Source: Mobula hypostoma (taxonomy: Eukaryota). Taken from it: a DNA stretch of 64,000 bases. Below the pieces are notes generated by a model, which saw only the letters and a list, made by a program, of their open reading frames with translations, ran no database searches and was not told the origin of the DNA. How positions within the stretch are numbered: position 1 is the stretch's first letter; each line of letters begins with the position of its first letter. The position numbers and the translations under genes are program-made. Positions 1 to 33,400 of this stretch are shown here, piece by piece. Location of the stretch: positions 31,496,001 through 31,560,000 of the forward strand of contig NC_086101.1 of assembly GCF_963921235.1 (NCBI RefSeq), in the 5' to 3' direction.

Positions 1-540
1 CTCAGGTCTCTTTTAAATCTTCCCCTCTCATGTTAAGTATATGCTTTCGAGTTTTACACTCCCCTAACCTGGGGAGAAGACCTCATCTATTTCCCTCATG
101 ATTTTATATATTTCTTTAAGCGCATCCCTCAACATCCTAAGCTCTGGGAGTACAAGTCCCAGCCTCTCCTTAACATCTTTGTGAATCTTTACTGCACTCT
201 TTCCAGCATAATGACTTCCTTCCCTTTGCTGGGGGAACCAAAACCGTACGCAGTACTCAAAATGTGATCTAATGGATGTCTGCTATAATGATGTCCGATT
301 CCTGTACTCAGAGCTTCAACTGATGAAGGCCAGCATGTCAAACGTCTTCTTCACCACCCTGTCTACCGGTGCTGCCACTTTCAGAGAACCATGTACCTGT
401 ACCCCCAGGGTTTTCTATCTACAACAGTCCCCAGAGCTCTGCCATCATCGTATAAATCTTGCCATGGTTTAATTGACCAAAATGAATCACTTCACATTTA
501 TCAAAGTTAAATTTCTCCACTGTACCAATTTAGTTGTCAA
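1..540 (-). mobile_element. Decayed CR1 LINE, 3' part of ORF2
   Basis: Minus strand shows decayed FNxDKCEVIHF and RxHFEYCVRFW (PHLEYCVQFW-like) motifs of CR1 ORF2, with stops and frameshifts. Confidence 0.8.
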
Positions 541-944
541 ATGCAGACTTACTGATCATGTTAACTGTCTTGTCAACATGGATCTGGTGGGATCTGAAGC
601 ATCTCTCTGTGCTGCACAACTTTAGCAAATATGATCCAGTGCCATTAACCTTCACAGCAGTGAAAATAATCGGGGACCAAGTGGTGGCAGAGAAAGATTC
701 AAGACTGGTGAGTGAGATCAAGCAGGAGTATGAGGCTTCCCAGTTTGCGAGTGAAAGACATTGGGGGGGGGGGGGAATCTGCCTGTCCCAATCCCAGTGC
801 TGCACCGTGCTGGCAGACTGGGGACTCCAACATCCACAATATCACCCCATTAAGTTCTGTCATTTCAAGTTCACAGTTTAACGTAAATTTAATACCAATG
901 TATACACATGTCACCATATACCACTTTGAGATTAATTTTCTTGC

Positions 945-1540
945 AGGCATTCACAGCAGAACAAATAAATACAATAGACTCAATGAAAAGCTATACACAA
1001 ACAAAGACTGACAAACAACCAGTGTGCTAAAGAAAACACACTGTGCAAATACAATAATAAATAAATAGATAAATAGATAGATAAATCAACAATACTGGGA
1101 CATGAGTTGCAGAGTGTTTGAAAGTGAGACCATAGGTTGTGTTCAGTGATCAGTTCAGAGCTGAGCTCATTCAGGAGCCTGATGGTTGAAGGGTAATAGC
1201 TGTCCCTGAACCTGCTGGTGTGGGACCTAAGGCTCCTGTACCTCCTTCCTGATTGCAGCAGCGAGAAGAGAACATGGCCTGGATGGTGGGTGTCCTTGAT
1301 GATGGATGCTGCTTTCTTGTGACAGTGCTCCTTGTAGATGTCATCAATGGTGGGGAGAACTTTTCCTGAGATGGACTGGGCTGTATCCAACATATTTTGC
1401 GGGCATTTCTATTCTTGGGCATTGGTGTTTCCATACCAGTCCATAATGCAACCAGTCAGGATACTCTCCACTGTGCATCTGTAGAAGTTGGTCAAAGTTT
1501 CAGATGACCTGCTGAATCTATACAAACCAGCAGGCTTATA
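945..1540 (-). mobile_element. Rex1/Babar-type LINE 3' fragment
   Basis: ORF 980-1393 (KAASIIKDTHHPGHVLFSLLQSGRRYRSLRSHTSRFRDSYYPSTIRLLN) is the typical C-terminus of this clade, followed by an AT-rich 3' UTR. Confidence 0.8.
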
Positions 1541-2170
1541 CAGAGATCTGAGGAAAACCTTTCATCTGAGAGGGTGATTGAAATCTGGAACCTGATGGGG
1601 TGATGAAGGCAGAGACTCTCACAACATTTGAAAAACATTGGGCTGATCACTGGATTCATTAAGGCAGAGAAGGCTCTGCACTAAGTGCTGATCAATAGAA
1701 TGAATGTACATGGATATGTGTTAGCCTGCATGGACATGATGGGCTGAAGGGCCTGTTTCTGTGACGAATGACCCTATGACTGAACCAATTTAAGTGCGAG
1801 TTCCCTGTTGGTCCTTTCGGTCACTCTGCTATAGGAAAGATGTTACTAAACTAGAAAGAATGCAGAACAGATTTACCAGCATGTTGCCTGAACCTAGGAG
1901 CCTGAATTACAAGGAAAGGACAAGGACTTTATTCCGTGGAATGTAGGAGATTGAGAGGTGGCCTGATAAAGGTATACAAGACCATGAGGGCACAGACAGT
2001 ATGAAAGCTTGTAGTCTTTTTCACAGGGAAAGAGTGCTAAAAGCAAGAGAGCAGAGGTTTAAGATTAGAGGTGACAATTTAAAAGGGACATTAGGGGTAG
2101 CTTCTTCACACAGATGGTGGTGTGTATTTGGGAAGAGGAATCTGGCCTACAGTAGGGGTCTGCTGGGCCA
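1540..2170 (+). mobile_element. Two short CR1 3'-end fragments
   Basis: Decayed QxRFTxMLP and LRGxLIxVYK motifs, plus the gggctgaagggcctgtttctg tail shared with other CR1 copies here. Confidence 0.7.
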
Positions 2171-3013
2171 AATCTGGCTTTGCCATTTCTGTGGGCTCCT
2201 CCCTGCCTTCTCCATAACTAATGGATGGGAGTGAGGTAAGGTGAGACGATGACCCAAAGCCCCAAATCCTACAGTTGTATGTTGGACCTAGCACAGGTCC
2301 CAGTGAGGTCACCCTTCAACCTGACGGAGCTTTTGACAGCAGCTGATGAAGTGACCACCCTCTGACCTCAGGAGAGGAGACTCAACTTCAACTCACCTCA
2401 CAGCTTCACCCACAGACAGAAAAGTTGTGTAACTACTAGCTTTGCTGTCAGTGTTGGTTCATTATTCACAATCCCTTGACCACACCCAGGGTTGGTGAAG
2501 ACACCAGATGTCAGGTTAAACAGAGAAAAGATAGAGCAATTCCAATGTAATATCCCACTGCTACTAGGACCTGTTCACACCCCAGTGTCCCAGACCGAGG
2601 CAATACGTTTACACCGGCCAATTCATCCAACTCCATACCATCCATTTCCACCCCGGCACAGAGAGAGGGAAAACACAGAAACAGGCCATTCGACCCTCTG
2701 AGTCTATCAGCCACCCACTGTTTCCCAATGTCAGAACATTTTCTAACTCAAATCTCACAACAGACTGGTTTTAGAGCTATTTTAACCCAGTGAGTGAACA
2801 CACTGAGTCTATGGGTAGGTGAGGTGGATAGAGTTAGGAGTAGTGTCAACACTGGGCCTGCTTCCTGCTGTTCCTCTCAGTCTCACCCTCTCTCTTGTCT
2901 CTCTCTGGAAACGTATTTGTCAGCTTTCACAGTCTAAGCCTTAAGAGATAAATGATTCAAAAAGGAAAGGTTCTCTCTCAATCTCGCTCTTTCTGCTTTG
3001 CTCTGTCACTCTG

Positions 3014-3034
3014 TATGTGTGTGTGTGTGTGTGA

Positions 3035-3070
<36 letters not shown>
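3014..3070. repeat. Compound (GT)n(GA)n microsatellite
   Basis: Directly visible dinucleotide runs. Confidence 0.95.
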
Positions 3071-3109
3071 GACAGAGAGAAAGAGAACACATTTGGGTTA
3101 CTTTATCCA

Positions 3110-3320
3110 TTTCCAAGGAACAAGAGTTGCTCCAGGACATGCCCCCTTCTCATTTTTACCATCAAGGAGGAGGTACAGGAGCCTAAAGACACACACTCAA
3201 TGTTTTAAAAACAGCTTCTTCCAACTCCGCCGTCAGATTTCTGAATGAACAATGAACCATGAACACCACCTCACTACCTCCATTGTTCTGTCTCTTTTTG
3301 CACTATTTGTTTAATTTATA
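3110..3320 (+). mobile_element. Rex1/Babar-type 3' end fragment
   Basis: Encodes PGHAPFSFLPSRRRYRSLKTHTQCFKNSFF, homologous to the 980-1393 fragment. Confidence 0.75.
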
Positions 3321-3591
3321 GTCGAACAAGACACAGTCAATCAGAATTGACTGGGTGCAGGTTAATGAGATTGGGCAGATTAATGGATCAGCAAGGACTA
3401 GTTAGGCCGAAGGGCCTGTTTCTGTCCATGACTCTGTCAAATTAAAATCTCACACTAGTAGCGACTCGAGGAAGAGAGTTCCAATATTTCCACACTCTGG
3501 TGCGGGAACTATTTACCAACTTAATCCGGAAGGACCTGCTCTAATTCTGTGATTCTGGACTTCCCAACTAGAGGGATAAATCCCTCACACC

Positions 3592-3605
3592 TCAACAGGT
3601 GGCGC
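3592..3605 (+). promoter_or_regulatory. Candidate CTCF motif (intron 1 of the class II alpha-like gene)
   Basis: TCAACAGGTGGCGC matches the CTCF core CC(A/G)(C/G)(C/T)AG(A/G)(G/T)GGC(A/G)C at 12/14. Confidence 0.55.
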
Positions 3606-3749
3606 TCTCTTCTCTCCTCCGAATCCCCTACTCCGATCGCGTTCATTCACGCACCCTTAGTCCTCCTTCCCATTCCTCTGTTTGACCCCGAGCCCGGCTC
3701 CAGCTCCAATCCAGGCCGCGGCTTCACCACACTGACCTCCCTCCCTCTG

Positions 3750-4745
3750 ACGCTGAGCGGCCAGCCCTCAGCAGAGCCTCCCCTTGCCAAGGGGCACCGG
3801 CCAGTCTGCGCAGGCATTGCCCGACGTCTATGAGGACAGCTAAAATCTGGAAACCTGTTCCTCCGGTCGGGAGATGTCTCCGCTGGCGGAGGGACGCCCC
3901 CACCCCCTGCCCTGTCTCATCGGAGGTCGGTGTGACTCAGGTGTGTGGAGCGACTTGGGCTGGGCTCATCTCCGCTCATTCGGAGTTATGAATCCCACAG
4001 AATTTGTTCCATACCTCATCGCCACTTCCAGTGTCATTCAGAGATGCGGGTATGAGTTGCTACCCCATACCCTCTAATTCCTAGCCCTGGTCACCGTCCC
4101 GACACGAATGGCCGTCGGTGTTTTCCCACCTATGAACGCTAGGGTATCCAATGGAACTCTCTTTACGAAAATGTCCTTCCCTGGTACGTGTGAACTTGGG
4201 TGGAGATGGGGGTTTCTACATTGAGCGGTGCCCTGTAGAAGTTGGTGAGTGCACACGGATCTCTCAGCCACTTGTCACTTCTATGGGCTGGAAGAGATTG
4301 TGTACCGGATGTACATGGAGTACACGAGGCTGCAGACCTATTCGCACATCTGGGGGTAGGGAGAGGGGGAAGGGACTGGTCCTCGCTTTCTGGTTGCATT
4401 TTACCTCGACCCGCTTCATAGTTTGGCCATCCAGTACGGAGGAGGGAAAGGAGGGAGCAGGATATCCTGGGACTGGGAAAAACAGTAGCTATCCGTTGAT
4501 CCAGGAAGCGGGCAGTGGAAGGTTCCGTCTGGGATGACAACCAGGCTATGTTCCGGGAGAGTTGGGTATCGGTGCCCGGGGAACCGTGGAGAAGGAACAC
4601 GCGGTGTCCACGGGTGCAGTGGAAGTTTTAACGGTAAATGTCTGTGACAGGGATTGGAACGTTTTAATTTAGGTTGTGTAAGTCACTGCTATTGTCTCTG
4701 TGTATGTTGTAGTATTGTAGAATGTCATTTGCAATAAATGTATTT
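3750..4745 (+). mobile_element. Tx1 (L1-clade) LINE 3' fragment
   Basis: Frameshifted motifs HRPDT, QWNSLY, LGWR..LH.AVPC, CHFYGLEE (zinc-knuckle region) and EKEHAVSTG, then a 3' UTR with AATAAA near 4733. Confidence 0.75.
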
Positions 4746-4779
4746 TGTGTTTCGGTACTTTTGTACCCCTGCACCCGTA

Positions 4780-5640
4780 CCTGGACGTGCAAAAAATTAC
4801 TGTCCCCGATAATTCCTTCTGCACCGTTCGGGGGAAACATATCCTAAAGGAAACATATCAAACACCCTCGCCTGTAAACCCCAGTAAGAAACTGACTGAA
4901 CTGTGTAATCCAGCTGCTGTTCTGAGAAGGCAGACCACACTCCCTCCCTCACTGGCCAGTATGTCCCCCACCCCTTCCACCGCAGTGTCCGATCTCCTAC
5001 AGGACCGAGACTCCGGTTTCGGGGCACACACTGCACCAGCCGTGTTCAGGACCTCCGAGTCCGTGTGGTCACCAGTGGTCCCCGTACACCGACTTTGATC
5101 ACTGCCTCGATCCTCACATGTTACTATTCCGTCCGTCTGACTCCGGCCGGGATATTAGTGCATGGGCTGAACATAACTCGGTTCGCCGCTCCCTTTATTG
5201 CACTAACGCCGCCACGCAGAGAACTCCCGCTCTGGGCCGTCATGGACTCCAGAACCCCATTGGCAAGCTGTAATCAGTGACCGGGGCAGTTGGACCTTCA
5301 CACCTGACCGGCGGAGTGGCTGGCCATTATCCCGAGTTCTCGTCTCCTGCCAACACTCCCCTTCATCTCCATGGACTAGCTCCGGTCAACAGCAATTCCC
5401 TTCCTGAAGTTGATATGAAAACAGGCAGACCTGTCCTGTCCACTACCTCAGTCCCCCCTTCAGATATTCCTCCGGGTTTGTGAGCGGACCCACTCTTTAC
5501 AAACCCATGATGTTTCTCCCCAACTAACTCACAGGTTTCAAACTGCTGTCACTCTGATCAGATTGCAGACCTCTCCCCGGTTCGGATCAAGGCCCAACAT
5601 CTCAAATTCCAATTTGACTCAGTTTCCAATTTGACAATAG
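4780..5640 (-). mobile_element. Very old CR1-like ORF2 relic, unusually CpG-rich
   Basis: Faint colinear matches on the minus strand to HGFVK, YLDFQK (seen as HINFRK), HGxxG and VTSGVPQGSVLGP. Highly diverged. Confidence 0.4.
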
Positions 5641-5846
5641 AGACGGGCAGTGGGCTCAGGTTTATAGATACATCCCGAGGATAGGTTGTCACAGGCTGCA
5701 TTCTCTGTTAAAACAAGTTAAAGTTATCGTAGCATTGTAAGGTTAAGAACATATATAGACATAAATACATACTCTATTATAACGTTAACTTGTTTTAGGG
5801 AGTTCAAATAGTAAATTATTTTAAATGTTACTATCAGATAACTCAC

Positions 5847-5913
5847 ATTTTGTAGCCTGTGCTCCACATATTAAAGCCGTCGCTAACACGAAGAAGTAAA
5901 CCTCAGCTCCCAT
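5847..5913 (-). CDS. Leader (signal peptide) exon 1 of an MHC class II alpha-chain-like gene; remaining exons probably left of the window
   Basis: ATG at 5913 gives MGAEVYFFVLATALICGAQATK + 1 nt, then a GTGAGT donor (phase 1, as in MHC leader exons). It has a hydrophobic core and a small-residue cleavage region. It resembles the nurse-shark class II alpha leader as I recall it (MEARNYFSVLVLVLIQGGWAGK). A canonical X-Y promoter lies ~150 bp upstream. Confidence 0.8.
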
Positions 5914-6064
5914 TCTTAATCTCCCGGGTCTCGCAAACGCGACCTCTCCTCGTCCAGCACCAGTTCCGCTCAATCTGCCACCAGTTTCTGCCACAGAATA
6001 AACCTAACTTCAGTCGTTCACTCTCGTGCAGTCTGTTATTGATATGCGCCTGAGGACAGCTGAA

Positions 6065-6129
6065 CCAATCAGACGCCGAGATTCTCACTCGTCATCTGTT
6101 TCCAGGTGGAATACATACCAATTTGCTCC
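6065..6129 (-). promoter_or_regulatory. MHC class II-type S-X1-X2-Y promoter module (module 1, proximal)
   Basis: X = CCTGGAAACAGATG (6106-6093; HLA-DRA recalled as CCTAGCAACAGATG). X2 = TGACGAG. Exact 20-bp spacer. Y = CTGATTGG (6072-6065). Weak S-position GGAGCAA 16 bp upstream of X. Confidence 0.85.
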
Positions 6130-6401
6130 GAATTACACCAAACTGGATTTGCTTTCGTTGAGGAAGAGATGCTCCTAGAAGGGGAGCATTCTTCAGAAGA
6201 AACATTTACAAGAGACTTTTGACCTGCGTTGAACTGAACAGTCTACGCAGATAATTTTACTTCACCCTGTCACTGCGGAGTTGAAGGAGAGGACGGATCC
6301 ACTCTGTTCAGTGGGTCGGACAGCACCAATAAGTGAGAAACTGGGTTAATTTCGCAAACAGGAGGAAATCTGCAAATTCTGGAATTTCAAGCAACATGCA
6401 T

Positions 6402-6537
6402 AAAAGTTGCTGGTGAACGCAGCAGGCCAGGCAGCATCTCTAGGAAGAGGTACAGTCGACGTCTCGAGTCCCGAAAAGTCGACCGTACCTCTTCCCAGAG
6501 ATGCAGCCTGGCCTGCTGCATTCACCAGTAACTTTTA
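6402..6537. repeat. ~60-bp-arm inverted repeat made of Penelope-associated terminal sequence
   Basis: Arms 6402-6460 and 6478-6537 are near reverse complements with a 17-nt loop. The same sequence family flanks Penelope fragments elsewhere in the window. Confidence 0.85.
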
Positions 6538-6849
6538 CGTGTTAACTGGGTTAATTTATCAGGTTTGAGGCTTTTCGTCAAGTCTGGTAAACCTTTATCC
6601 TTCCCTCTGCTGTACCTGACCCTCCCCTATCTTTGCTATTGAAAACTTTGACTATTGGTTTTGGACTCTCTATCTCTCCACTGAGAACCAGAACAGCACA
6701 GCACAAGAAAAGGCCTTTCAGCCTTCCATGTCTGTACTGACCATGATGTCAATTTAAACTGAACCCATCTGCCCACACATGGTCTGTATCCCTCCATTCG
6801 CTGACTAAATCCCTCTTAAATATTGCTACAATTCACTCTGGGAAAAACT

Positions 6850-9799: not shown

Positions 9800-12700
9800 C
9801 CCTCCACCTTTGTTCAGGACAGGAAAAACGGTAATCCCGGTAACTATAGGCACTGAGCCTCATGTCAGAAGTTGAGGCCACTGTTGTTTGTGGAATATAT
9901 CAATGATTTGGATGAAAGTGTTCAGTAGACAGGTGGATAACACCAAGATAAGTGGAGTTGTGGACAATGTAAAGCACATCAAAGAATACTGTGGGATTCA
10001 GACCATTTACAGATATGGTCAGAGAAGTGGCAGAAGGAGATCATTCCAGGCAAGTGTGAGATGTTACACATTGGGAAGTCAAATCAAAGGAGATAGTATA
10101 CAGTTAATTGGAGACCTCTTAGTAGTATCAGAATATAGAGGGATCTTGGGGATCCAGCCACAATTCACTGAAGTGGCTACATAAGTGGATAAGTGGTAAA
10201 GAAGGTGTACAGAATGTTTTCCTTCATTGGTAGGGTGTCCAGTTTAACAGTAAGAAAGTCATAATACAGCTATGTACATAATACATAACACAGCATAATA
10301 CACTTTTTTCTGGGGCAGTCGCGGCAGCGATGAGCGTCGTGATGCTGGAGTTGGATTCGCCGTCTGGAGTCACCTTGTTCAGAAACTTGCCAGCCTCCCC
10401 AGGGTGTGAACGACCGGCTCATGACACTACAGCTTCCACTACAGAACAGAAGTCAAGCCGCCCTGATCAGCGCCTATGCCCCCACAATGACCAACCCGGA
10501 TGAGACAAGACAAGTTCTATGAAGAACTAGACGCCCTACTATCAGCAGTGAGCAGCACCGACAAGCTGATCTTGCTCGGCAACTTCAGTGCGAGAGTAGG
10601 GCACGACTCTGCAGCCTGGCAGGGAGTTGTTGGGAGACATGGGATGGGCAAATGTAACAGTAACGGCCTACTCTTACTGAAGAACTGTACAGCATACGAC
10701 CTGCTCATCACCAACACAACTTTCCGCCTGCCTACCCATCACAAGACCTCGTGGATGCACCCCCTTTCTAAGCATTGGCATCTTATCGACTATGTCATTG
10801 TCAGGAGAAAAGACAGGCAGGATGTCAGAGTGACCAAGGCCATGTGTGGCACTGACTGCTGGACAGATCACAGGCTCATTGTCTCCAAAATGAAGCTCCG
10901 TTTCAGACCCAAGAGGCGACCACAAGGAAGCAAGGCTATGAAAAGAATCAATGTGACCAGGCTGAAGAACCCCAGCATAGCTTCAGCACTGGTTGAAGAT
11001 TTAGAAACCAAGCTTGCTGACCTACACCTTGCAGGCAGCACTGTGGATGACTGGGATCGCTTCAGGGATGCTGTCCATTCATCTGCACTGAAGATGCTAG
11101 GGCTTTCTACCTGCAAGCAGAATGACTGGTTCGATGAGAATGATGAGGAGATACAGGCTCTACTTGTTGAAAAGCAATGCCTTCATCATGCCCATCAGAA
11201 CAACCCATCATCAGCTGCCAAGAAAAACGCCTTTATCAGTGCTTGCAGGACAGTCCAGAATAAACTGCGTAAAATGCAAGATGCCTGGCTGAGTATCAAG
11301 GCAGATGAAATACAGGGATACACTGACAGAAACGACTTGAAACGATTCTATGAAGCCCTCAACACTCTCTACAGACCTCAGTCTCTTGGGAGTTTCCCCT
11401 TCCTGAGTATAGATGGTACAACTCTCATTACAGATCCTGCAGGCTCAGATCCTGCAGAGATGGGCTGAACACTTTGAAGCCGTCCTCAACTGACCATCAT
11501 CTATTAACGATGAGGTGATAGACAGGATTCCCCAGGTCGACATCAACAGTGCCGTGAATGACCCACTAGTAGTGGCCGAAGTCACGAAACTGTCAGCCAG
11601 CTATCCAGTGGCGAAGCCCCGGGGCAGATGCCATACCTGCAGAGATCTACAAAGCCGGTGGTCCTGTACTTATAGAGAAGCTCACCGAGTTCTTCCAGTC
11701 TTTTTGGAAGCAAGGATCCATTCCTCAGGAACTTAAAGATACATCCATCATACACCTCTACAAGAGGAAGGGCAATCGACCAGTATACGACAACCACCGA
11801 GGAATCTCGCTGCTCTCCATCACAGGAAAAACCCTTGCAAGAGTCCCGCTAAATGGTCTGGTCACTCATCTGGAGCTGGGCCTGCTGCCAGAGTCACAGT
11901 GTGGCTTTCGCAAAGGTCGTGGGACTATTGACATGATTTTTGCCAGGCTCCAACTTCAGGAGAAGTGTCAGGAGCAGAATTGCGAACTCTGCACAACTTT
12001 TGTTGACCTCACAAAAGCCTTCGACACTGTCTGCCGACAAGGCCTGTGGGGGAACATATCAAAGTTCGGCTGCCCCGCCAAATTCATTCAAATGGTTTGC
12101 CAGTTCCATGATGGCATGATGGCCAGAGCGCTGGACGGGGGAGAATCCTCTGAGGTGTTCCTGATCACCAATGGCATCAAACAGGGCTGTGTGCTCACAC
12201 CCACACTGTTCAGCATGATGTTTACTGCCATGCTGAATGATGCCTTCCAGGACAGAGATGCTGGAATCAGCCTCAGGTACAGAGTGGATGGGAAGCTCTT
12301 CAACCTGAGGAGACTTCAAGCAATTACCAAAGTGAAGGAGACTGTTCTGAGAGACTTCCTCTTTGCCAATGACTGCGCCCTGTATGCTGGCCTGGAGACA
12401 GAAATGCAAGTCAATATGGACAAATTCTCCATAGCTTGTGACAACTTTGGACTCACCATCAACATCAAAAAGACCGAAGTCATGCACCAGCCTGCCCCTA
12501 GTGCACCGTACACAGAACCGAAAATAACAATCAAAGGACGGAAACTACAGGCAGTGGACCAGTTTACTTACCTCGGCAGCACCCTCTCCCGAGCAGTGAC
12601 TATTGATACAGAAGTTAACTGCAGAATAACGAAGGAAAGTTCTGCTTTCGGTAGACTGTGCTCCACTGCATGGGAACGTCGAGGAATCAGTCCAGCAACA

Positions 12701-13940
12701 AAACTGAAGGTCTACAGAACCGTGGTAATCACTGCCCTCCTGTATGCCTGTGAAACGTGGACTGTGTATTGAAGGCATGCAGGACAGCTCAACCATTTCC
12801 ACATGACTTGTCTTCGCAGAATATTAGACATCAGGTGGCAAGACAAAGTACCAGACACTGAAATTCTCTCTAGGGCAAGTCTACCATCAGTCCACACACT
12901 GCTGATGAGAGCACAGACCCGGTGGGCAGGTCATGTCATCCGCATGCCGGACGAGCGCATACCCAAGCAGCTCCTTTTTGGGGAACTCTCTGCTGGAAGA
13001 CACTCGCAAGGAGGGCAAAAGAAACATTACAATGACACACTAAAGGCCTCCCTGAAGTAATTTGACATAGACACGGCCTCCTGGCACAAAACTGCCTTGC
13101 TTGGCGCGGCCTCATCCACAAGGGCTGTCAAGTTTACGAGGCAAGGCACATTGCTGAAGCACAACATAAGCGCGAGCTGCGCAAGTCCAGACCCACCAGC
13201 GCAACAACTGCAGTGCCTACACACGTCTGCCCAACATGTGCCAGGACATCCCGTGCCAGAATTGGCCTGACTAGTCATCTTTGGACACACCACATCCAGT
13301 CTCAAAGTGACTAATGATGTCGAGGTCTTCATCGATGACGATGGACGAACCATACAAGAAAGTAATAATACAGCTATATAAATCTTCAGACAAACTGCAC
13401 TTGGAGTATTGCGTGTGGTTCTGGTCATCCCCTGAAAGGAAGGATGTGGAAACTGTGGAGAGGGTACAGATGAGGTTTACCAGGATGCTGCTTGAATTAG
13501 AGGTATGAGCTATAAGGAAAGGTTAGACGACTTGAGCTGTCCTTCCTGGAATGTTGGATGCTTAAGGGAGACTTGATAGAGGATTTTAAAATTATGAGGG
13601 TCATAGATAGGGTGGATATTCTGAACCTTTTCCCCAGGGTAGAAATATAAATGCCAAAGGACATGCTTTTAAGGTTTTAGGGTTGAAGATTAGATGTGAT
13701 ATGAGGGACTAGTCTTTTACACAGAGGTAGGTACTTGGAATAGGTTACCAGGAATAGTGGTGGAAGCAGGCAGTTTGATGAAGTTTAAGAAGTTTTTGGA
13801 CAGACACATGAATATGAAGGGAATGGAGGAATATGGATGATACATAGGAAGAGGACATTGAACATCATTTGTTATCAAGACCATTGTGGGCCAAAGGGCC
13901 TGTCCAGTGCTGTACCTATTTTCTAAGTCTTATATTCTAT
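9800..13940 (+). mobile_element. CR1 fragment split by the RTE insertion (pieces ~9800-10273 and ~13356-13940)
   Basis: CR1 ORF2 motifs continue across the insertion (CEMLHIG before; HLEYCVWFWS and ERVQMRFTRML after). Confidence 0.8.
10298..13355 (+). mobile_element. 5'-truncated RTE-clade LINE (endonuclease + RT), inactivated by a few stops and frameshifts
   Basis: YTFFW, GVGFA, SAYAPT, DKFYEEL, GDFNARVG-like, WTDHRL, FVDLTKAFDTV, NGIKQGCVL and LFANDCAL motifs. A 22-bp target-site duplication (aagaaagt(c/a)ataatacagctat) lies at 10252-10273 and 13356-13377. Confidence 0.93.
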
Positions 13941-20690: not shown

Positions 20691-23043
20691 GTAAGGCAAT
20701 GGATGTAGTGTATATGGATTTCAGTAAGGCATTTGCTAAGGTTCCTCATGCAAAGCTCTTTCAGAAAGTAAGGAGGCATGGGATCCAAGGAGACCTTGCT
20801 TTGTGGATCCAGAACTGGCTTGCCCACAGAAGGCAAAGAGTGGTTGTAGATGGTTCATATTCTGCATGGATGAACCATGTCTACGCCCACCTGGACAAGC
20901 CAGTGAGCATGGTGAGGGTCATGTTTTTTGACTTCTCCAGTGCGTTCACCACCATCCGCCCTGCTCTGCTGGGGGAGAAGCTGACAGCGATGCAGGTGGA
21001 TGCTTTCCTGGTGTCATGGATTCTTGATTACCTGACTGGCAGACCACAGTACGTGTGCTTGCAACACTGTGTGTCCGACAGAGTGATCAGCAGCACTGGG
21101 GCTCCACAGGGGACTGTCTTGTCTCCCATTGTCTTCACCATTTACACCTCGGACTTCAACTACTGCACAGAGTCTTGTCATCTTCAGAAGTTTTCTGATG
21201 ACTCTGCCATAGTTGGATGCATCAGCAAGGGAGATGAGGCTGAGTACAGGGCTACAGTAGGAAAGTTTGTCACACGGTGTGAGTAGAATTATCTGCAGCC
21301 TAATGTGAAAAAGACTAAACAGCTGGTGGTAGACCTGAGGAGAGCTAAGGTACCGGTGACCCCTTTTTCCATCCAGGGGGTCAGTGTGGACATGGTGGAA
21401 GATTACAAATACCTGGGGATACGAATTGGCAATAAACTGGACTGGTCAAAGAACATTGAGGCTGTCTACAAGAAGGGTCAGAGCTGTCTCTATTTCCTGA
21501 GGAGACTGAGGTCCTTTAACATCTGCTGGACGATGCTGAGGATGTTCTACGAGTCTGTGGTGGCCAGTGCAATCATGTTTGCTGTTGTGTGCTGGGGCAG
21601 CAGGCTGAGGGTAGCAGACACCAACAGGATCAACAAACTCATTTGTAAGGCCAGTGATGTTGTGGGGATGGAACTGGACTCTCTGATGGTGGTGTCTGAA
21701 AAGAGGATGCTGTCCAAGTTGCATGCCATCTTGGACAATGTCTCCCATCCACTACATAATGGACTGGTTGAGCACAGGACTACATTCAGCCAGAGACTCA
21801 TTCCACCGAGATGCAACACAGAGCATCATAGGAGGTCATTCCTGCCTGTGGCCATCAAACTTTACAACTCCTCCCTTGGAGGGTCAGACACCCTGAGCCA
21901 ATAGGCTGGTCCTGGATTTATTTCCTGGCATAATTTACATATTACTATTTAATTATTTATGGTTTTATTACTATTTAATTATTTATGGTTTTATTACTAT
22001 TTAATTATTTATGGTGCAACTGTAACGAAAACCAATTTCCCTCGGGATCAATAAAGTATGACTATGACTATGACTATGGTGACCAGTGGTGTTCTGCATG
22101 GATCTGTTCTGGGATCCCTTCTCTTTGAGATTTTTATAAATGTCCTGGATGACGAAGTAGAAGGATGAGTTAGTAAGTTTGTTGATAACACAGAAGTTGG
22201 AAGGTGGTGTGATAGTCTGGGGGTTGTCAGAGTCTACAGCGGGACATTGATAGGATGCAGAACTGGGCTGAGAAGTGGCATATGGAGTTCAACCCAGATA
22301 AGTGTGAAGTGGTTCATTTTGGTAGGTCAAATTTGATGACAGAATATTAATAGTAAGACTCTTGGCAGTGTGGAGGATCATAGATCTTGGGTCCATGTCC
22401 AAAGGGCACTCAAAGCTGCTGCGCAGGTGGACAGTGTTGTTAAGAAGGTATTTGGCGTGATGGTCTTCATCCACCATGGGATTGAGTTCGAGAACCATGG
22501 GGTAATGTTACAGCTATACAAGACCTTGGTCAGACCCCACTTGGAGTACTTTGTTCAGTTCTGGTCACCTTACTACAGGAAGGATGTGGATACTGTAGAG
22601 AGAGTGCAGAGGAGATTTACAAGGATGTTGCCTAGATTGGTGAGCATGCCTTATGAGAATAGGTTGAGTGAACTTGGTGTTTTCTCTTTGGAGCGACAGA
22701 GTATAAAAGGTGTATAAGATGAAGAGAGGTATTAACCATGTGGATAGCTAGAGGCTTTTTCCCAGGGCTGAAATGGCTAACATGAGGGGGTATAGTTTTA
22801 AGGTGCTTGGAAGTAGGCACAGAGGGGATGTCAGGGGTAAGTTTTTCACACAGAGAGTGGCGACAGTGGTAGAGGCAGATACAATCAGGTCTTTTAAGAG
22901 TCTCTTAGGTAGGTACATGGAGCTTAGAAAAATAGAGGGCTATGCAGTAGGGACATTCAAGGCAGTTTCTAGTGTAGGTTACATGGTCAGCACAACATTG
23001 TGTGCCAAAGGGCATGTAATGTGCTGTAGATTTCTATGTTCCA
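20690..23043 (+). mobile_element. CR1 3' half split by the Rex1 insertion (20690-20870 and 22078-23043)
   Basis: MDVVYMDFSKAF...GSYSAW stops at 20870. VTSGV resumes at 22078, followed by LVRPHLEYFVQFW. Confidence 0.9.
20871..22077 (+). mobile_element. 5'-truncated Rex1 (Rex1/Babar) LINE, nearly intact RT 3' portion
   Basis: RVMFFDFSSAFTTIRP, TGAPQGTVLSP, CHLQKFSDDSAIVGCI and KGQSCLYFLRRLRSF. AATAAA followed by a (tatgac)n tail. One stop near 21286. Confidence 0.93.
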
Positions 23044-24400: not shown

Positions 24401-27090
24401 CCACCTACCACTAAAACAGGTCTATGACAAATCTGTCTCCCTGGCTTCACACTCACCTTCAGAGCATCTGGACAATAAAAACACCTGTACTTGCAGCTCT
24501 GTCTTCAATTCCAAGCAAACTCATCACCAGGCTCTCAGTGTCGGGACTCAACCTTCCTTTGCAAATGGACCCTCAACTTCCACTTCCTTATCAACGGACG
24601 GCAATCAGTAAGGATAGGCAGCAACACCTCCTCCACAAGCATCCTCAACACTGGTGCCCCAGAAATACAGTATAGATCCTCAGCCCACCTCTTAATGTCC
24701 TGTACACTAATGGCTAGATCTAGCTCTAATTCCATCTACTAGTTTGCAAATGATACCACCACTATGGTCTGTATCTTAAATAACGATGAGTCAGAATACA
24801 AGAAGGAGATAGAGAACCTTGTGACATGATGTTACGCCAACAGCCATTTTCTGAATATCAGCAAAACAAAAGGGCTGGACATTGACTTCAGAAAGGAGGA
24901 GAAGTATGTGCTCCCCTTTACATCAATGGTGCTGAGTTCGAGAAGGTTGAGAGCTTCAAGTTCCAAAGAGTGACCGTCATCAAAAGCCTCTGCTGGTTCA
25001 ACCACTTTTTAAAAAAGGAGGGAGAGAGAAACCGGGGAACTATAGACCGGTTAGCCTAACATCGGTGGTGGGGAAAATGCTAGAGTCAGTTATCAAAGAT
25101 GTGATAACAGCACATTTGGAAAGCGGTGAAATCATCGGACAAAGTCAGCATGGATTTGTGAAAGGAAAATCATGCCTGACGAATCTCATAGAATTTTTTG
25201 AGGATGTAACTAGTAGAGTGGATAGGGGAGAACCAGTGGATGTGGTATATTTGGATTTTCAAAAGGCTTTTGACAAGGTCCCACACAGGAGATTAGTGTG
25301 CAAACTTAAAGCACACGGTATTGGGGGTAAGGTATTGATGTGGATAGAGAATTGGTTAGCAGACAGGAATCAAAGACTGGGAATAAACGGGACCTTTTCA
25401 GAATGGCAGGCAGTGACTAGTGGGGTACCGCAAGGCTCAGTGCTGGGACCCCAGTTGTTTACAATATATATTAATGACTTGGATGAGGGAATTAAATGCA
25501 GCATCTCCAAGTTTGCGGATGACATGAAGCTGGGCGGCAGTCTTAGCTGTGAGGAGGTTGCTAAGAGGATGCAGGGTAACTTGGATAGGTTAGGTGAGTG
25601 GGCAAATTCATGGCAGATGCAATTTTATGTGGATAAATATGAGGTTATCCACTTTGGTGGCAAAAACAGGAAAACAGATTATTATCTAAATGGTGGCCAA
25701 TTAGGAAAAGGGGAGGTGCAACGAGACCTGGGTGTCATTATACACCAGTCATTGAAAGTTGGCATGCAGTTACAGCAGGCGGTGAAAAAGGCGAATGGTA
25801 TGCTGGCATTCATAGCGAGAGGATTCGAGTACAGGAGTAGAGGAGGTACTACTGCAGTTGTACAAGGCCTTGGTGAGACCACACCTGGGGTATTGTGTGC
25901 AGTTTTGGTCCCCTAATCTGAGGAAAGACATTCTTGCCATAGAGGGAGTACAAAGAAGGTTCACCAGATTGATTCCTGGGATGGCAGGACTTTCATATGA
26001 TGAAAGACTGGATCGTCTAGGCTTATACTCTCTGGAATTTAGGAGATTGAAGGGGGATCTTATTGAAACGTATAAAATCCTAAAGGGATTGGGTAGGCTA
26101 GATGCAGGAAGATTGTTCCCGATGTTGGGGAGGTCTAGAACGAGGGGTCACAGTTTGAGGATAGAGGGGAAGCCTTTTAGGACTGAGATTAGGAAAAACT
26201 TCTTCACACAGAGAGTGGTGAATCTGTGGAATTCTCTGCCACAGGAAACAGTTGAGGCCAGTTCATTGGCTATATTTAAGAGGGAGTTAGATATGGCCCT
26301 TGTGGCTAAAGGGATCAGGGGGTATGGAGGGAAGGCTGGGGCGGGGTTCTGAGTTGGATGATCAGCCATGATTATACTGAATGGCGGTGCAGGCTCGAAG
26401 GGCCGAATGGCCTACTCCTGCACCTATTTTCTATGTTTCTATGTTTCTATGTAACTGCAATGACCAAGGAAATGTGCCAGCGCCCTTACTTCCTCAAGAG
26501 GCTAAAGAAACCTGGCATGCCCTTTTGACCCTCACCAATGAATGAACCATAGAAAGCATCCTATCTAGATGCATTGTGGATTCCTTTGCCCAAAGGAGGA
26601 AGAAACAGCAGAATTGTGGACACAGCTCAGTGCATCACAGAAACCAGCCTCCCCACAATGGACTCAGTCTATAGATCTCGCTGTCTTGATGGAGCAGCCA
26701 ACATAATCAAAGACTCACCACTCTGGATTCTCTCATCTTTCCCTCCTCCCCACCTCCCCACCTCCCCCATACCCTCACCCCCCGCCGCCACTCCCTTTGG
26801 ACAGAAGATACAAAAGCCTGAATGCACATACCATCTGTCATAAGAACATTTTCTTTTGCGCTGTTATAAAACTATTGAATGGTTTCCTTGCATGATAAGA
26901 TGAGTTCTTGACATCACAATCTATTTTGCCATGGCCTTGCACCTTATTGTCTGCCTGCATTGTACTTTCTCTGTAACTGTAACACTTTATTCTCCATTCT
27001 GTTATTCGTTTCCCTTGTACTGCCTCATTACACTGATGAGATGAAATGATCTGTAGGAATGGCATGCAAAACGAACTTTTTCACTGCATG
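24400..27090 (+). mobile_element. Old Rex1/Babar-type LINE split by a young CR1 (24400-25001 and 26453-27090)
   Basis: LNTGAP and KFANDT before the break; YFLKRLKK and AANIIKD after it. Confidence 0.75.
25002..26452 (+). mobile_element. Young 5'-truncated CR1 (RT 3' half)
   Basis: ORF 25065-25916 has YLDFQKAFDKVPH, GVPQGSVLGP and SKFADD, one frameshift near 25850 and a (ttctatgt)n tail. Confidence 0.95.
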
Positions 27091-27334
27091 ACAATAATAA
27101 ACCAATTTACTAATTCAAGGCCATGAGCCAAGTGCTTGAAGATAGATCCACTAGTCAGTAACAACATGTTGGGCTGATTGGACCTTTTCCTGCTGTATAA
27201 CTCTGTGACAGGGAGCTGCCTGGATTCCAAATGAAGCATTGAACTGTAAAGGGTTAACCTTTCCTGCTCAACTAGTGAAACTCCCTTGAACCTGACCAAG
27301 TGCATTGTACTGGGAAGAGAAATGCAAAGAAAAC

Positions 27335-27453
27335 TGGAAAGTCTCCGCTCCAGCCTCAACAGTAACTTCACACCCTGATCCACCATCAGCCAATGAGAGG
27401 ACAGAGCACCGAGCCATCACCAGTTGCTGGTTGAAATGGATCACTGTGGGTCA
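27335..27453 (-). promoter_or_regulatory. S-X-Y module 3 with NF-kB-like site
   Basis: S-like TGACCCA (27453-27447), 15-bp spacer, X ACCAGCAACTGGTG (27431-27418), 20 bp, Y CTCATTGG (27397-27390), and GAGACTTTCC (27344-27335). Confidence 0.75.
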
Positions 27454-30400
27454 GAAATGGTTGGAGGTGAAATGGATCACTGTGGGACAGAGATGGTTGG
27501 AGGTGAAATGGATCACTGTGGGACAGAGATGGTTGGAGGTGAAATGGATCACTGTGGGTAGAGATGGTTGGAGGTGAAATGGATCACTGTGGGTCAGAGA
27601 CGGTTGGAGGTGAAATGGATCACTGTGGGACAGAGATGGTTGGAGGTGAAATGGATCACTGTGGGTAGAGATGGTTGGAGGTGAAATGGATCACTGTGGG
27701 TCAGAGACGGTTGGAGCTGAAATGGATCACTGTGGGTCAGCAATGGTTGGAGGTGAAATGGATCACTGTGGGACAGAGACGGTTGGAGGTGAAATGGATC
27801 ACTGTGGGTCAGAGACGGTTGGAGGTGAAATGGATCACTGTGGGTCAGAGACGGTTGGAGGTGAAATGGATCACTGTGGGTCAGAGACGGTTGGAGGTGA
27901 AATGGATCACTGTGGGTCAGAGACGGTTGGAGGTGAAATGGATCACTGTGGGTAGAGACGGTTGGAGGTGAAATGGATCACTGTGGGTCAGAGACGGTTG
28001 GAGGTGAAATGGATCACTGTGGGTCAGAGATGGTTGGAGGTGAAATGGATCACTGTTGGTAGAGATGGTTGGAGGTGAAATGGATCACTGTTGGTAGAGA
28101 TGGTTGGAGGTGAAATGGATCACTGTGGGTCAGAGATGGTTGGAGGTGAAATGGATCACTGTTGGTAGAGATGGTTGGAGGTGAAATGGATCACTGTGGG
28201 TAGAGATGGTTGGAGGTGAAATGGATCACTGTGGGTCAGAGACGGTTGGAGGTGAAATGGATCACTGTGGGACAGAGATGGTTGGAGCTGAAATGGATCA
28301 CTGTGGGTCAGAGACGGTTGGAGGTGAAATGGATCACTGTGGGTCAGAGACGGTTGGAGGTGAAATGGATCACTGTGGGTCAGAGACGGTTGGAGGTGAA
28401 ATGGATCACTGTGGGTCAGAGACGGTTGGAGGTGAAATGGATCACTGTTGGTAGAGATGGTTGGAGGTGAAATGGATCACTGTTGGTAGAGATGATTGAA
28501 GGTGAAATGGATCACTGTGGGTCAGAGACGGTTGCAGGTGAAATGGATCACTGTGGGACAGAGATGGTTGGAGGTGAAATGGATCACTGTGGGACAGAGA
28601 CGGTTGGAGGTGAAATGGATCACTGTGGGTAGAGATGGTTGAAGGTGAAATGGATCACTGTGGGTCAGAGACGGTTGGAGGTGAAATGGATCACTGTGGG
28701 ACAGAGACGGTTGGAGGTGAAATGGATCACTGTGGGACAGAGATGGTTGGAGGTGAAATGGATCACTGTGGGTCAGAGACGGTTGGAGGTGAAATGGATC
28801 ACTGTGGGACAGAGATGGTTGGAGATGAAATGGATCACTGTGGGTCAGAGACGGTTGGAGGTGAAATGGATCACTGTGGGTCAGAGACGGTTGGAGGTGA
28901 AATGGATCACTGTGGGACAGAGATGGTTGGAGATGAAATGGATCACTGTGGGTCAGAGACGGTTGGAGGTGAAATGGATCACTGTGGGTCAGAGACGGTT
29001 GGAGGTGAAATGGATCACTGTGGGTAGAGATGGTTGGAGGTGAAATGGATCACTGTGGGTCAGAGACGGTTGGAGATGAAATGGATCACTGTGGGTAGAG
29101 ATGGTTGGAGGTGAAATGGATCACTGTGGGTCAGAGACGGTTGGAGGTGAAATGGATCACTGTGGGTCAGAGATGGTTGGAGGTGAAATGGATCACTGTG
29201 GGTCAGAGACGGTTGGAGGTGAAATGGATCAATGTGGGACAGAAATGGTTGGAGGTGAAATGGATCACTGTGGGACAGAGATGGTTGGAGCTGAAATGGA
29301 TCACTGTGGGTCAGAGACGGTTGGAGATGAAATGGATCACTGTGGGTCAGAGACGGTTGGAGGTGAAATGGATCACTGTGGGTCAGAGACGGTTGGAGAT
29401 GAAATGGATCACTGTGGGTAGAGATGGTTGGAGGTGAAATGGATCACTGTGGGACAGAGATGGTTGGAGATGAAATGGATCACTGTGGGTCAGAGACGGT
29501 TGGAGATGAAATGGATCACTGTGGGTCAGAGACGGTTGGAGGTGAAATGGATCACTGTGGGTCAGAGACGGTTGGAGGTGAAATGGATCACTGTGGGTCA
29601 GAGACGGTTGGAGGTGAAATGGATCACTGTGGGTCAGAGACGGTTGGAGGTGAAATGGATCACTGTGGGTCAGAGACGGTTGGAGGTGAAATGGATCACT
29701 GTGGGACAGAGATGGTTGGAGCTGAAATGGATCACTGTGGGTCAGAGACGGTTGGAGGTGAAATGGATCACTGTGGGTCAGAGACGTTGGAGGTGAAATG
29801 GATCACTGTGGGTCAGAGATGGTTGGAGGTGAAATGGATCACTGTGGGTCAGAGACGGTTGGAGGTGAAATGGATCACTGTGGGTCAGAGACGGTTGGAG
29901 GTGAAATGGATCACTGTGGGTAGAGATGGTTGGAGGTGAAATGGATCACTGTGGGTCAGAGACGGTTGGAGGTGAAATGGATCACTGTGGGTCAGAGATG
30001 GTTGGAGGTGAAATGGATCACTGTGGGTAGAGATGGTTGGAGGTGAAATGGATCACTGTGGGTCAGAGACGGTTGGAGGTGAAATGGATCACTGTGGGTC
30101 AGAGACGGTTGGAGGTGAAATGGATCACTGTGGGTCAGAGACGGTTGGAGGTGAAATGGATCACTGTGGGACAGAGATGGTTGGAGCTGAAATGGATCAC
30201 TGTGGGTCAGAGACGGTTGGAGGTGAAATGGATCACTGTGGGTAGAGACGGTTGGAGGTGGAATGGATCACTGTGGGTCAGAGACGGTTGGAGGTGAAAT
30301 GGATCACTGTGGGTCAGAGATGGTTGGAGGTGAAATGGATCACTGTTGGTAGAGATGGTTGGAGGTGAAATGGATCACTGTTGGTAGAGATGGTTGGAGG

Positions 30401-33400
30401 TGAAATGGATCACTGTGGGTCAGAGACGGTTGGAGGTGAAATGGATCACTGTGGGTCAGAGATGGTTGGAGGTGAAATGGATCACTGTGGGTAGAGATGG
30501 TTGGAGGTGAAATGGATCACTGTGGGTCAGAGACGGTTGGAGGTGAAATGGATCACTGTGGGACAGAGATGGTTGGAGGTGAAATGGATCACTGTGGGTA
30601 GAGATGGTTGGAGGTGAAATGGATCACTGTGGGTCAGAGACGGTTGGAGGTGAAATGGATCACTGTGGGTCAGAGACGGTTGGAGGTGAAATGGATCACT
30701 GTGGGTCAGAGACGGTTGGAGGTGAAATGGATCACTGTTGGTAGAGATGGTTGGAGGTGAAATGGATCACTGTTGGTAGAGATGGTTGAAGGTGAAATGG
30801 ATCACTGTGGGTCAGAGACGGTTGGAGGTGAAAATGGATCACTGTGGGTAGAGAGATGGTTGGAGATGAAATGGATCACTGTGGGTCAGAGACGGTGAGG
30901 TGAAATGGATCACTGTGGGTCAGAGACGGTGAAATGGATCACTGTGGGTCAGAGAGGTTGGAGATGAAATGGATCACTGTGGGTCAGAGACGGTTGGAGG
31001 TGAAATGGATCACTGTGGGTCAGAGACGGTTGGAGGTGAAATGGATCACTGTGGGTCAGAGATGGTTGGAGGTGAAATGAAATGGATCACTGTGGGTCAG
31101 AGACGGTTGGAGGTGAAATGGATCACTGTGGGTCAGAGACGGTTGGAGGTGAAATGGATCACTGTGGGTCAGAGACGGTTGGAGATGAAATGGATCACTG
31201 TGGGTCAGAGACGGTTGGAGGTGAAATGGATCACTGTGGGTCAGAGACGGTTGGAGTGAAATGGATCACTGTGGGTCAGAGACGGTTGGAGGTGAAATGG
31301 ATCACTGTGGGACAGAGATGGTTGGAGTGAAATGGATCACTGTGGGTAGAGACGGTTGGAGGTGAAATGGATCACTGTGGGTCAGAGACGGTTGGAGGTG
31401 AAATGGATCACTGTGGGTCAGAGACGGTTGGAGAGAAATGGATCACTGTGGGTCAGAGACGGTTGGAGGTGAAATGGATCACTGTGGGTCAGAGACGGTT
31501 GGAGGTGAAATGGATCACTGTGGGTCAGAGATGGTTGGAGGTGAAATGGATCACTGTGGGTAGAGATGGTTGGAGGTGAAATGGATCACTGTGGGTCAGA
31601 GACGGTTGGAGGTGAAATGGATCACTGTGGGTCAGAGACGGTTGGAGGTGAAATGGATCACTGTGGGTCAGAGACGGTTGGAGGTGAAATGGATCACTGT
31701 GGGACAGAGATGGTTGGAGGTGAAATGGATCACTGTGGGTCAGAGACGGTTGGAGGTGAAATGGATCACTGTGGGTCAGAGACGGTTGGAGGTGAAATGG
31801 ATCACTGTGGGTCAGAGACGGTTGGAGGTGAAATGGATCACTGTGGGTCAGAGACGGTTGGAGGTGAAATGGATCACTGTGGGTCAGAGACGGTTGGAGG
31901 TGAAATGGATCACTGTGGGTCAGAGAGGTTGGAGGTGAAATGGATCACTGTGGGTCAGAGACGGTTGGAGGTGAAATGGATCACTGTGGGTCAGAGACGG
32001 TTGGAGGTGAAACGGATCACTGTGGGTCAGAGACGGTTGGAGGTGAAATGGATCACTGTGGGTCAGAGACGGTTGGAGGTGAAATGGATCACTGTGGGTA
32101 GAGATGGTTGGAGGTGAAATGGATCACTGTGGGTCAGAGACGGTTGGAGGTGAAATGGATCACTGTGGGTCAGAGACGGTTGGAGGTGAAATGGATCACT
32201 GTGGGTAGAGACGGTTGGAGATGAAATGGATCACTGTGGGTCAGAGACGGTTGGAGGTGAAATGGATCACTGTGGGTCAGAGACGGTTGGAGGTGAAATG
32301 GATCACTGTGGGTCAGAGACGGTTGGAGGTGAAATGGATCACTGTGGGACAGAGACGGTTGGAGCTGAAATGGATCACTGTGGGTCAGAGACGGTTGGAG
32401 GTGAAATGGATCACTGTGGGTCAGAGACGGTTGGAGGTGAAATGGATCACTGTGGGTCAGAGACGGTTGGAGGTGAAATGGATCACTGTGGGTCAGAGAC
32501 GGTTGGAGGTGAAATGGATCACTGTGGGACAGAGACGGTTGGAGGTGAAATGGATCACTGTGGGTCAGAGACGGTTGGAGGTGAAATGGATCACTGTGGG
32601 TCAGAGACGGTTGGAGGTGAAATGGATCACTGTGGGACAGAGATGGTTGGAGGTGAAATGGATCACTGTGGGTCAGAGACGGTTGGAGGTGAAATGGATC
32701 ACTGTGGGTCAGAGACGGTTGGAGGTGAAATGGATCACTGTGGGACAGAGACGGTTGGAGGTGAAATGGATCACTGTGGGACAGAGATGGTTGGAGCTGA
32801 AATGGATCACTGTGGGTCAGAGACGGTTGGAGGTGAAATGGATCACTGTGGGACAGAGATGGTTGGAGGTGAAATGGATCACTGTGGGTAGAGATGGTTG
32901 GAGGTGAAATGGATCACTGTGGGTCAGAGACGGTTGGAGGTGAAATGGATCACTGTGGGTCAGAGACGGTTGGAGGTGAAATGGATCACTGTGGGTCAGA
33001 GACGGTTGGAGGTGAAATGGATCACTGTGGGTCAGAGATGGTTGGAGGTGAAATGGATCACTGTGGGTAGAGATGGTTGGAGGTGAAATGGATCACTGTG
33101 GGTCAGAGACGGTTGGAGGTGAAATGGATCACTGTGGGTCAGAGATGGTTGGAGGTGAAATGGATCACTGTGGGACAGAGATGGTTGGAGGTGAAATGGA
33201 TCACTGTGGGTCAGAGACGGTTGGAGGTGAAATGGATCACTGTGGGTAGAGATGGTTGGAGGTGAAATGGATCACTGTGGGTCAGAGACGGTTGGAGGTG
33301 AAATGGATCACTGTGGGTCAGAGACGGTTGGAGGTGAAATGGATCACTGTGGGTCAGAGACGGTTGGAGGTGAAATGGATCACTGTGGGACAGAGATGGT

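Follow-up and report, generated by a model that had tools for sequence, protein, structure and literature searches.

The window analysed here is a 64,000-nucleotide stretch of devil ray DNA, in which positions are counted from the first letter. On its minus strand, positions 5847-6129 very probably contain exon 1 of a classical MHC class II alpha-chain gene that is expressed, together with the core promoter of this gene. The exon lies a long way upstream from the rest of the coding sequence, and its small size hides it from views based on open reading frames. From upstream to downstream, the elements are the following:

6118-6129, minus strand: candidate S box (GGAGCAAATTGG), 11 nt upstream of X1, assigned by position only and the weakest of the elements
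6093-6106, minus strand: X1 box (CCTGGAAACAGATG), an RFX-type site (sequence reading and pattern search)
6088-6094, minus strand: X2 box TGACGAG, which contains the CRE half-site TGACG and overlaps the end of X1 (sequence reading)
6073-6092, minus strand: spacer of 20 nt between X1 and Y (sequence reading)
6065-6072, minus strand: Y box (CTGATTGG), an inverted CCAAT NF-Y site (sequence reading and pattern search)
6057-6062, minus strand: E-box CAGCTG (sequence reading)
6036-6046, minus strand: AT-rich stretch (CATATCAATAA), putatively TATA-like, with the contig 5' ends 20-30 nt farther down
5914-6016, minus strand: 5' untranslated region within exon 1, of 103 nt or more (contig ends at 6016, 6011 and 6009 in runs X3, X1 and X2, respectively)
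5847-5913, minus strand: coding part of exon 1, 22 codons and one nucleotide (MGAEVYFFVLATALICGAQATK, then T; sequence and spliced contigs)
5841-5846, minus strand: phase-1 splice donor GTGAGT, used in all four runs
1-5840, minus strand: the part of intron 1 inside the window, running off its left edge (the window lacks the 30 nt that follow the splice joint)

The ATG at 5913 opens a coding stretch of 67 nt that extends to 5847, with its last base being the first of a Tyr codon. The original prediction of a 67-nt minus-strand coding exon ending in a phase-1 GTGAGT is exact, at 5913-5847 and 5846-5841, and the exon is covered by the four runs described below. The same prediction spoke of a signal peptide of 22 residues. 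There are indeed 22 codons, but the signal peptide itself is probably 20 residues long and Thr-Lys the first mature residues, because the leader combines a hydrophobic core (VYFFVLATALIC) with the cleavage motif AQA at -3 to -1. The exon is thus a phase-1 leader exon that ends a few residues into the mature chain, as is characteristic of class II alpha genes.

Public sequencing runs were searched with positions 5847-6060. Four small runs (X1 to X4, always called runs here, the promoter elements being called boxes), from one organism and one study, contained 61-83% of the sampled words, and their contigs were placed on positions 3100-6600. The contigs cover 5847-6016 in run X3, 5847-6011 in run X1, 5847-6009 in run X2 and 5847-5980 in run X4, with zero differences from the genome, and contig depth over exon 1 is high in the four runs. 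In all of them the depth is zero at 5089-5790, on the intron side, and at 6025-6375, on the promoter side. The runs had been tagged as RNA by guess; the exon-only coverage supports the guess, and we therefore regard them as derived from RNA.

In four out of four runs, contigs depart from the genome at exactly 5847 and continue into 30 identical letters, from which it follows that the GTGAGT donor is used. The check proposed with the prediction, a look for spliced reads at 5847, thus gave the same break in every run, into a sequence that reads like class II alpha. The 30 nt beyond the joint are not found in the window, even when allowing three mismatches; therefore, intron 1 exceeds 5,846 nt and its acceptor lies to the left of the window. 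An intron 1 longer than 5.8 kb had been predicted, and the contigs bear this out, placing the acceptor and all further exons beyond the left edge. In line with this placement, no alpha1, alpha2 or any other MHC or Ig exon was found in the window, be it in stop-to-stop reading frames of the minus strand at 1-6200, among all open reading frames, or in six-frame motif scans. In the published map of the white shark, two IIA genes span 37 and 80 kb, each upstream of a IIB gene on the same strand, so in sharks it is usual for genes of this family to have a long first intron. Classical IIA and IIB genes are the only ones in the elasmobranch class II region, which adjoins the class Ia region (PMC10751288).

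The part of intron 1 inside the window also contains a compound (TG)21(GA)17 microsatellite at 3012-3086. At 4686-4943, two of the four runs have low-depth contigs (depth 2-4, 248-258 nt, no differences), which may represent pre-mRNA or a transcribed repeat.

Read across the splice joint, the transcript encodes MGAEVYFFVLATALICGAQATK followed by YQHEQLMVYI and then a codon starting with G, the junction falling between ATK and YQHEQLMVYI. The ten residues beyond the joint were scored against 29 rows, drawn from seven families, of the curated alignments of PMC8713811, in the columns of the first strand and with the register set by the exon border. The highest scores were obtained with class II alpha of elephant shark (20, shuffle fraction 0.002) and nurse shark (16). 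None of the other rows among the 29 scored above 14, the next best being skate b2m, with 14, reached only with a shift of one residue. The first strand of class II alpha is YLYDFTQV-YF in nurse shark and YVHDGSMV-SL in elephant shark (PMC8713811); the ray strand, of the form Y.H(D/E)..MV.Y, resembles both (YLYDFTQVYF and YVHDGSMVSL when written without the gap). Exact matches to the N-terminal peptide were absent from the supplements of PMC8713811 and PMC8010645. Queries of 30, 32 and 62 residues of the N-terminus had no match in protein collections, Pfam or the PDB, and contigs encoding the unspliced 30-residue and 57-residue open reading frames are not on record; these blanks carry no weight.

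Among the families compared, class II beta deserves attention, as its genes also have a phase-1 leader exon and an SXY promoter. The nurse shark class II beta row, however, scores 7 against the ray residues, compared with 16-20 for class II alpha. The b1 domain of class II beta has an invariant Cys in alignment column 12, as have class I a2 and WB b1 (PMC8713811); the ray transcript has the codon starting with G at this place, which cannot encode Cys. A similar case could be made for an MHC class I gene, a gene of the W category or another secreted or membrane protein of the Ig superfamily under an SXY promoter, given that class I genes use SXY modules (PMC4374748). The elasmobranch class I a1 domain, however, starts with an invariant G(S/T)HSLRYF (PMC8713811), which scores 0-5 against the ray residues, and the WA rows score 2 or less.

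Beta-2-microglobulin requires more careful consideration, and the exon structure is of little help here. We take human B2M exon 1 to have 67 coding nt and to end in phase 1, a geometry identical to that of the ray exon, and B2m is presumably MHC-linked in sharks. B2m genes are also driven by SXY modules (PMC4374748), and in elasmobranchs B2m is linked to the class II region (PMC10751288). An X-Y module in front of a 67-nt phase-1 leader is thus insufficient to name a class II alpha gene, because B2M exon 1 looks alike and SXY modules also serve class I and B2m. The protein sequence is more informative. With the one-residue shift, YQHEQLMVYI scores 14 against skate b2m SPPQVVVYTY. The five full elasmobranch b2m rows start with xxP(N/Q)V(Q/V)VYTY, in which the Pro and the TY are conserved (PMC8713811); both are missing from the ray N-terminus. 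The white shark map also speaks against B2m, as its B2M is only 4.4 kb long and lies 1.8 Mb from the nearest IIB gene.

Further residues of the ray protein can be read from chimeric ends of the contigs. The contig of run X1, of 204 nt, consists of 165 nt of exon 1, 9 letters and 30 nt of exon 1 again; this arithmetic (204 = 165 + 9 + 30) indicates that a cyclic contig is printed with 30 nt (k-1) repeated as an overlap. The contig of run X2, of 298 nt, comprises 101 nt from downstream of exon 1, 163 nt of exon 1 and a tail of 34 nt. By the overlap rule, this tail is made up of 4 new letters and the contig's own first 30, and corresponds to downstream nt 76-105. Read in sense and in the predicted frame, it encodes DERFYMDFG, residues 27-35. 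DERFYMDF is identical at 7 of 8 positions to DEIFYMDF of nurse shark class II alpha (residues 27-34) and at 6 of 8 to the elephant shark protein, with only 1 of 8 identical in nurse shark class II beta and in skate class I. The contig of run X4, of 449 nt, consists of a 24-nt tail, 134 nt of exon 1 and 291 nt from downstream. Taken as a reverse-complement copy of the contig's own 3' end, its tail corresponds to downstream nt 268-291 and encodes, again in the predicted frame, YPEEPVE, residues 91-97. This resembles the A strand of alpha2, which is FPEDNVE, YSEDLVE or FPKEPVE in class II alpha rows; the seven-residue fragment includes none of the alpha2 cysteines.

The contig of run X1 is joined in a cycle, with 9 extra letters between 6011 and 5847, the contig of run X2 joins downstream nt 105 to 6009, and the contig of run X4 joins the antisense of the alpha2 start to 5980; splice signals do not flank the joints. 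The two upstream loose ends were considered as alternative 5' exons and rejected. Since there is no AG before 6009 or 5980 and the letters of the tails are absent from the window, these are joins within one cDNA and not exons. The self-joined contigs resemble what template switching or snap-back yields from an mRNA of very high abundance. The residues known beyond exon 1 are thus 10, 9 and 7 only, and the tails are assigned to the same transcript by length arithmetic and agreement of frame, with no read-through.

In both tails motif, position and frame agree, making class II alpha the clear reading and disfavouring b2m. Of the class II alpha features, the alpha1 first strand and the motif DE.F(Y/H).D are both present, as fragments, the second of them from a chimeric tail. 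For b2m, which is without an alpha1 domain, there is no counterpart of the DERFYMDFG tail, and the YPEEPVE motif of the A strand is found about 270-290 nt after exon 1, instead of at the very start of exon 2. That the exon is the first of a beta-2-microglobulin gene is therefore extremely improbable. For class II beta, to the unfavourable N-terminal score and the excluded Cys are added the identity of 1 out of 8 in DERFYMDF, compared with 7 out of 8 for nurse shark class II alpha, and the location of the Ig A strand near residue 91, which fits an alpha1 domain of about 83 residues and not a b1 domain of about 90-95; we consider a leader exon of this type highly improbable. DE.FYMDF is a signature of the alpha1 domain of class II alpha, so that a class I, W-category or other Ig-superfamily gene is also very unlikely. 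The class II alpha gene originally proposed from the leader exon and its promoter is thus favoured by the best N-terminal scores, obtained with shark class II alpha, and by DERFYMDFG and YPEEPVE, each in the predicted frame and position. Compared with class II alpha of nurse and elephant shark, the ray protein has DE.FYMDF at the same residue numbers and an alpha2 A strand of the same type; it differs in species, being from a devil ray, and in being known from fragments only.

Upstream of this class II alpha exon, the order and spacing of the promoter elements can be compared with the start of the transcript. The contig ends suggest, within the limits of what contig ends can say, as they cannot fix a start, that the transcript starts around 6009-6016, with the Y box some 50 bp before it. 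The distances are 49-56 bp from the Y box to the contig 5' ends, or about 45-55 bp for the X1-Y pair, and 152 nt from the end of the Y box to the ATG at 5913. The arrangement proposed at the outset, X1, 20 bp and Y, about 150 bp upstream of the ATG, therefore describes the locus accurately, with the spacer at 6092-6073. The placement of X2 here, overlapping the end of X1, is that of X2 in class II promoters. An RFX site in X1 with a directly adjoining CRE-like X2, by the consensus that we take to apply to these boxes, is characteristic of SXY modules, as are a Y box about 20-22 bp from X1 (here 20 nt) and placement within an MHC gene's proximal promoter, for which the contig 5' ends speak here. 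An S box is to be sought about 15-17 bp upstream of X. In mouse SXY modules, no more than 16 bp separate S from X, and Y is 20-22 bp away (PMC4374748); the candidate S box GGAGCAAATTGG fits the rule of 16 bp, matched by position and not by consensus.

The possibility that the motif pair is a chance or decayed module, with the exon being driven by other elements and the likeness to X1-X2-Y having no regulatory meaning, should be weighed against the statistics of the motifs. The full X1-spacer-Y string occurs once in the window and in none of the shuffles, in a test that is circular, the pattern having been taken from the sequence itself. Because of this circularity, we used a fairer pattern of two cores, AACAGATG and CTGATTGG separated by 15-30 nt. 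It specifies 16 bases and is limited to the cores that we take to be common to HLA-DRA. There is a single match in the 64 kb, both strands searched (128 kb), and none in 100 shuffles; by our own estimate, about 5e-4 matches would be expected by chance in 128 kb of strand. Exact 31-mers of the 101-bp module are also present in DNA runs of four other organisms, in shares of 0.4-0.6 (five words sampled), compared with 0.17-0.22 for the exon stretch in other organisms. The higher sharing of the module may hint weakly at constraint.

Searches of the window for another copy of this module by blastn-short and by degenerate patterns, both stringent, found none, hence there is no internal consensus to which the module can be compared. 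The S box is doubtful, and the role of X1-X2-Y is read from sequence alone; these points would fit a module without function. Against this stand the single match of 16 specified bases at the right spacing, its low chance expectation, the exact 31-mers in other organisms and the 5' ends of an MHC transcript, mapped 45-55 bp downstream of the pair. We judge a chance or decayed module unlikely. The sole other CTGATTGG that is preceded by an X1-like stretch (containing CTAGTCAGTAACAACATG) is at 27130-27190 on the plus strand, opposite to that of the promoter module.

The promoter of HLA-DRA is among the known systems closest to the ray module. The order X1, X2, Y, the X1 core AACAGATG, the Y core CTGATTGG and the 20 nt that separate them are presumably the same, with 12 of 14 bases of the ray X1 box matching what we take to be the HLA-DRA X1. 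Both core strings occur in a paper on the HLA-DRA X box. In both genes, the module is a few tens of base pairs upstream of the start, and exon 1 of HLA-DRA, like that of the ray, presumably encodes the signal peptide and 2-3 mature residues and ends in phase 1. There are also differences. No octamer motif is seen in the ray promoter and its S box is not recognisable as the HLA-DRA one; exon 1 has 67 coding nt in the ray, compared with the 82 nt that we assume for HLA-DRA; intron 1 of the ray gene is longer than 5.8 kb; and the signal peptides are unrelated. Of the match to HLA-DRA geometry that had been suggested, order, cores, 20-nt spacing and phase 1 are upheld, and coding length and S box are not. 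The more general description of the promoter as mammalian in style holds for the identity, order and spacing of the motifs and for their distance to the transcript start.

By the grammar of the motifs, RFX would bind the X1 box, a factor of the CREB/ATF type the TGACG half-site and NF-Y the Y box, and the resulting enhanceosome of RFX, CREB/ATF and NF-Y would recruit a CIITA-type co-activator as in mammals. Exon 1 is spliced from its GTGAGT donor, over more than 5.8 kb of intron, to what reads as an alpha1 exon beyond the left edge; judging from the chimeric contig tails, the mRNA would then run on through an alpha1 domain of the class II alpha type into the alpha2 Ig domain. We infer such an enhanceosome because the X1 and Y cores and their spacing of 20 nt are like those of HLA-DRA, the position of the start fits and 31-mers of the module are shared with other organisms.

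The use of CIITA at the ray module is suggested by these motifs and should be treated with more reserve. Class I and B2m genes have SXY modules too, and the motif alone is therefore no proof of CIITA use. In class I and B2m genes they act via NLRC5, and it is the S box that decides between NLRC5 and CIITA (PMC4374748). The ray module shares with these NLRC5-dependent modules the X and Y sites for the same factors and the rules of spacing, its 20 nt being at the edge of the 20-22 bp range. It differs from them in the gene downstream, which is a class II alpha gene; in mammals, the S box and some X positions make the choice between NLRC5 and CIITA.

About 390 bp upstream of the transcript start, at 6401-6537, the window contains a near-perfect hairpin with arms of 66 nt (89% complementary) and a loop of 5 nt, with GTC...CGAAA-like letters in the loop region. 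Its left arm is matched by hundreds of short contigs, from both strands and with a summed depth of more than 100,000, in all four RNA-type runs. No tRNA or known RNA family was found near the promoter, the only Rfam matches to the 6401-6537 hairpin being sub-threshold ones to miRNA hairpins. It may belong to a group of hammerhead-carrying hairpin mini-elements.

Outside the promoter, the window is mostly transposon debris. Fragments of LINE-type reverse-transcriptase/endonuclease reading frames are present on both strands, at 10500-13060, 20699-21904, 25065-26352, 40661-41671, 49349-52180 and 55574-57654. A G-rich minisatellite of about 7 kb, with a period of about 36 nt and a GC skew of about 0.62, occupies 27335-34384 and fills the list of open reading frames with repetitive pseudo-ORFs.

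We see in this gene an ordinary member of the classical class II alpha family, with a promoter of a type already known from mammals. In the searchable literature, we found no description of an X1-X2-Y promoter in sharks or rays, and the work on cartilaginous-fish class II alpha that was examined is silent on promoters. Transcript evidence from the locus identifies the true promoter and exon 1 of a class II alpha gene in a cartilaginous fish. The novelty is modest and consists of one ray example, anchored by a transcript, in which the layout and spacing of X1-X2-Y have been kept in a cartilaginous fish. If X1-X2-Y works in cartilaginous fish, the enhanceosome of RFX, NF-Y and CIITA would predate the split between cartilaginous and bony vertebrates. 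We give about an even chance to the full proposition, in which a class II alpha gene of a cartilaginous fish is driven by the X1-X2-Y grammar, with the X1-Y spacing of human DRA, and the enhanceosome was fixed before that split. Positions 6065-6129, together with the start region, offer a short sequence for asking if the logic of the mammalian class II enhanceosome (RFX, CREB, NF-Y and CIITA) was already at work in the last ancestor shared by jawed vertebrates. To specialists, the ray module will be expected and no surprise, and it would be a useful confirmation that this control logic is very old.
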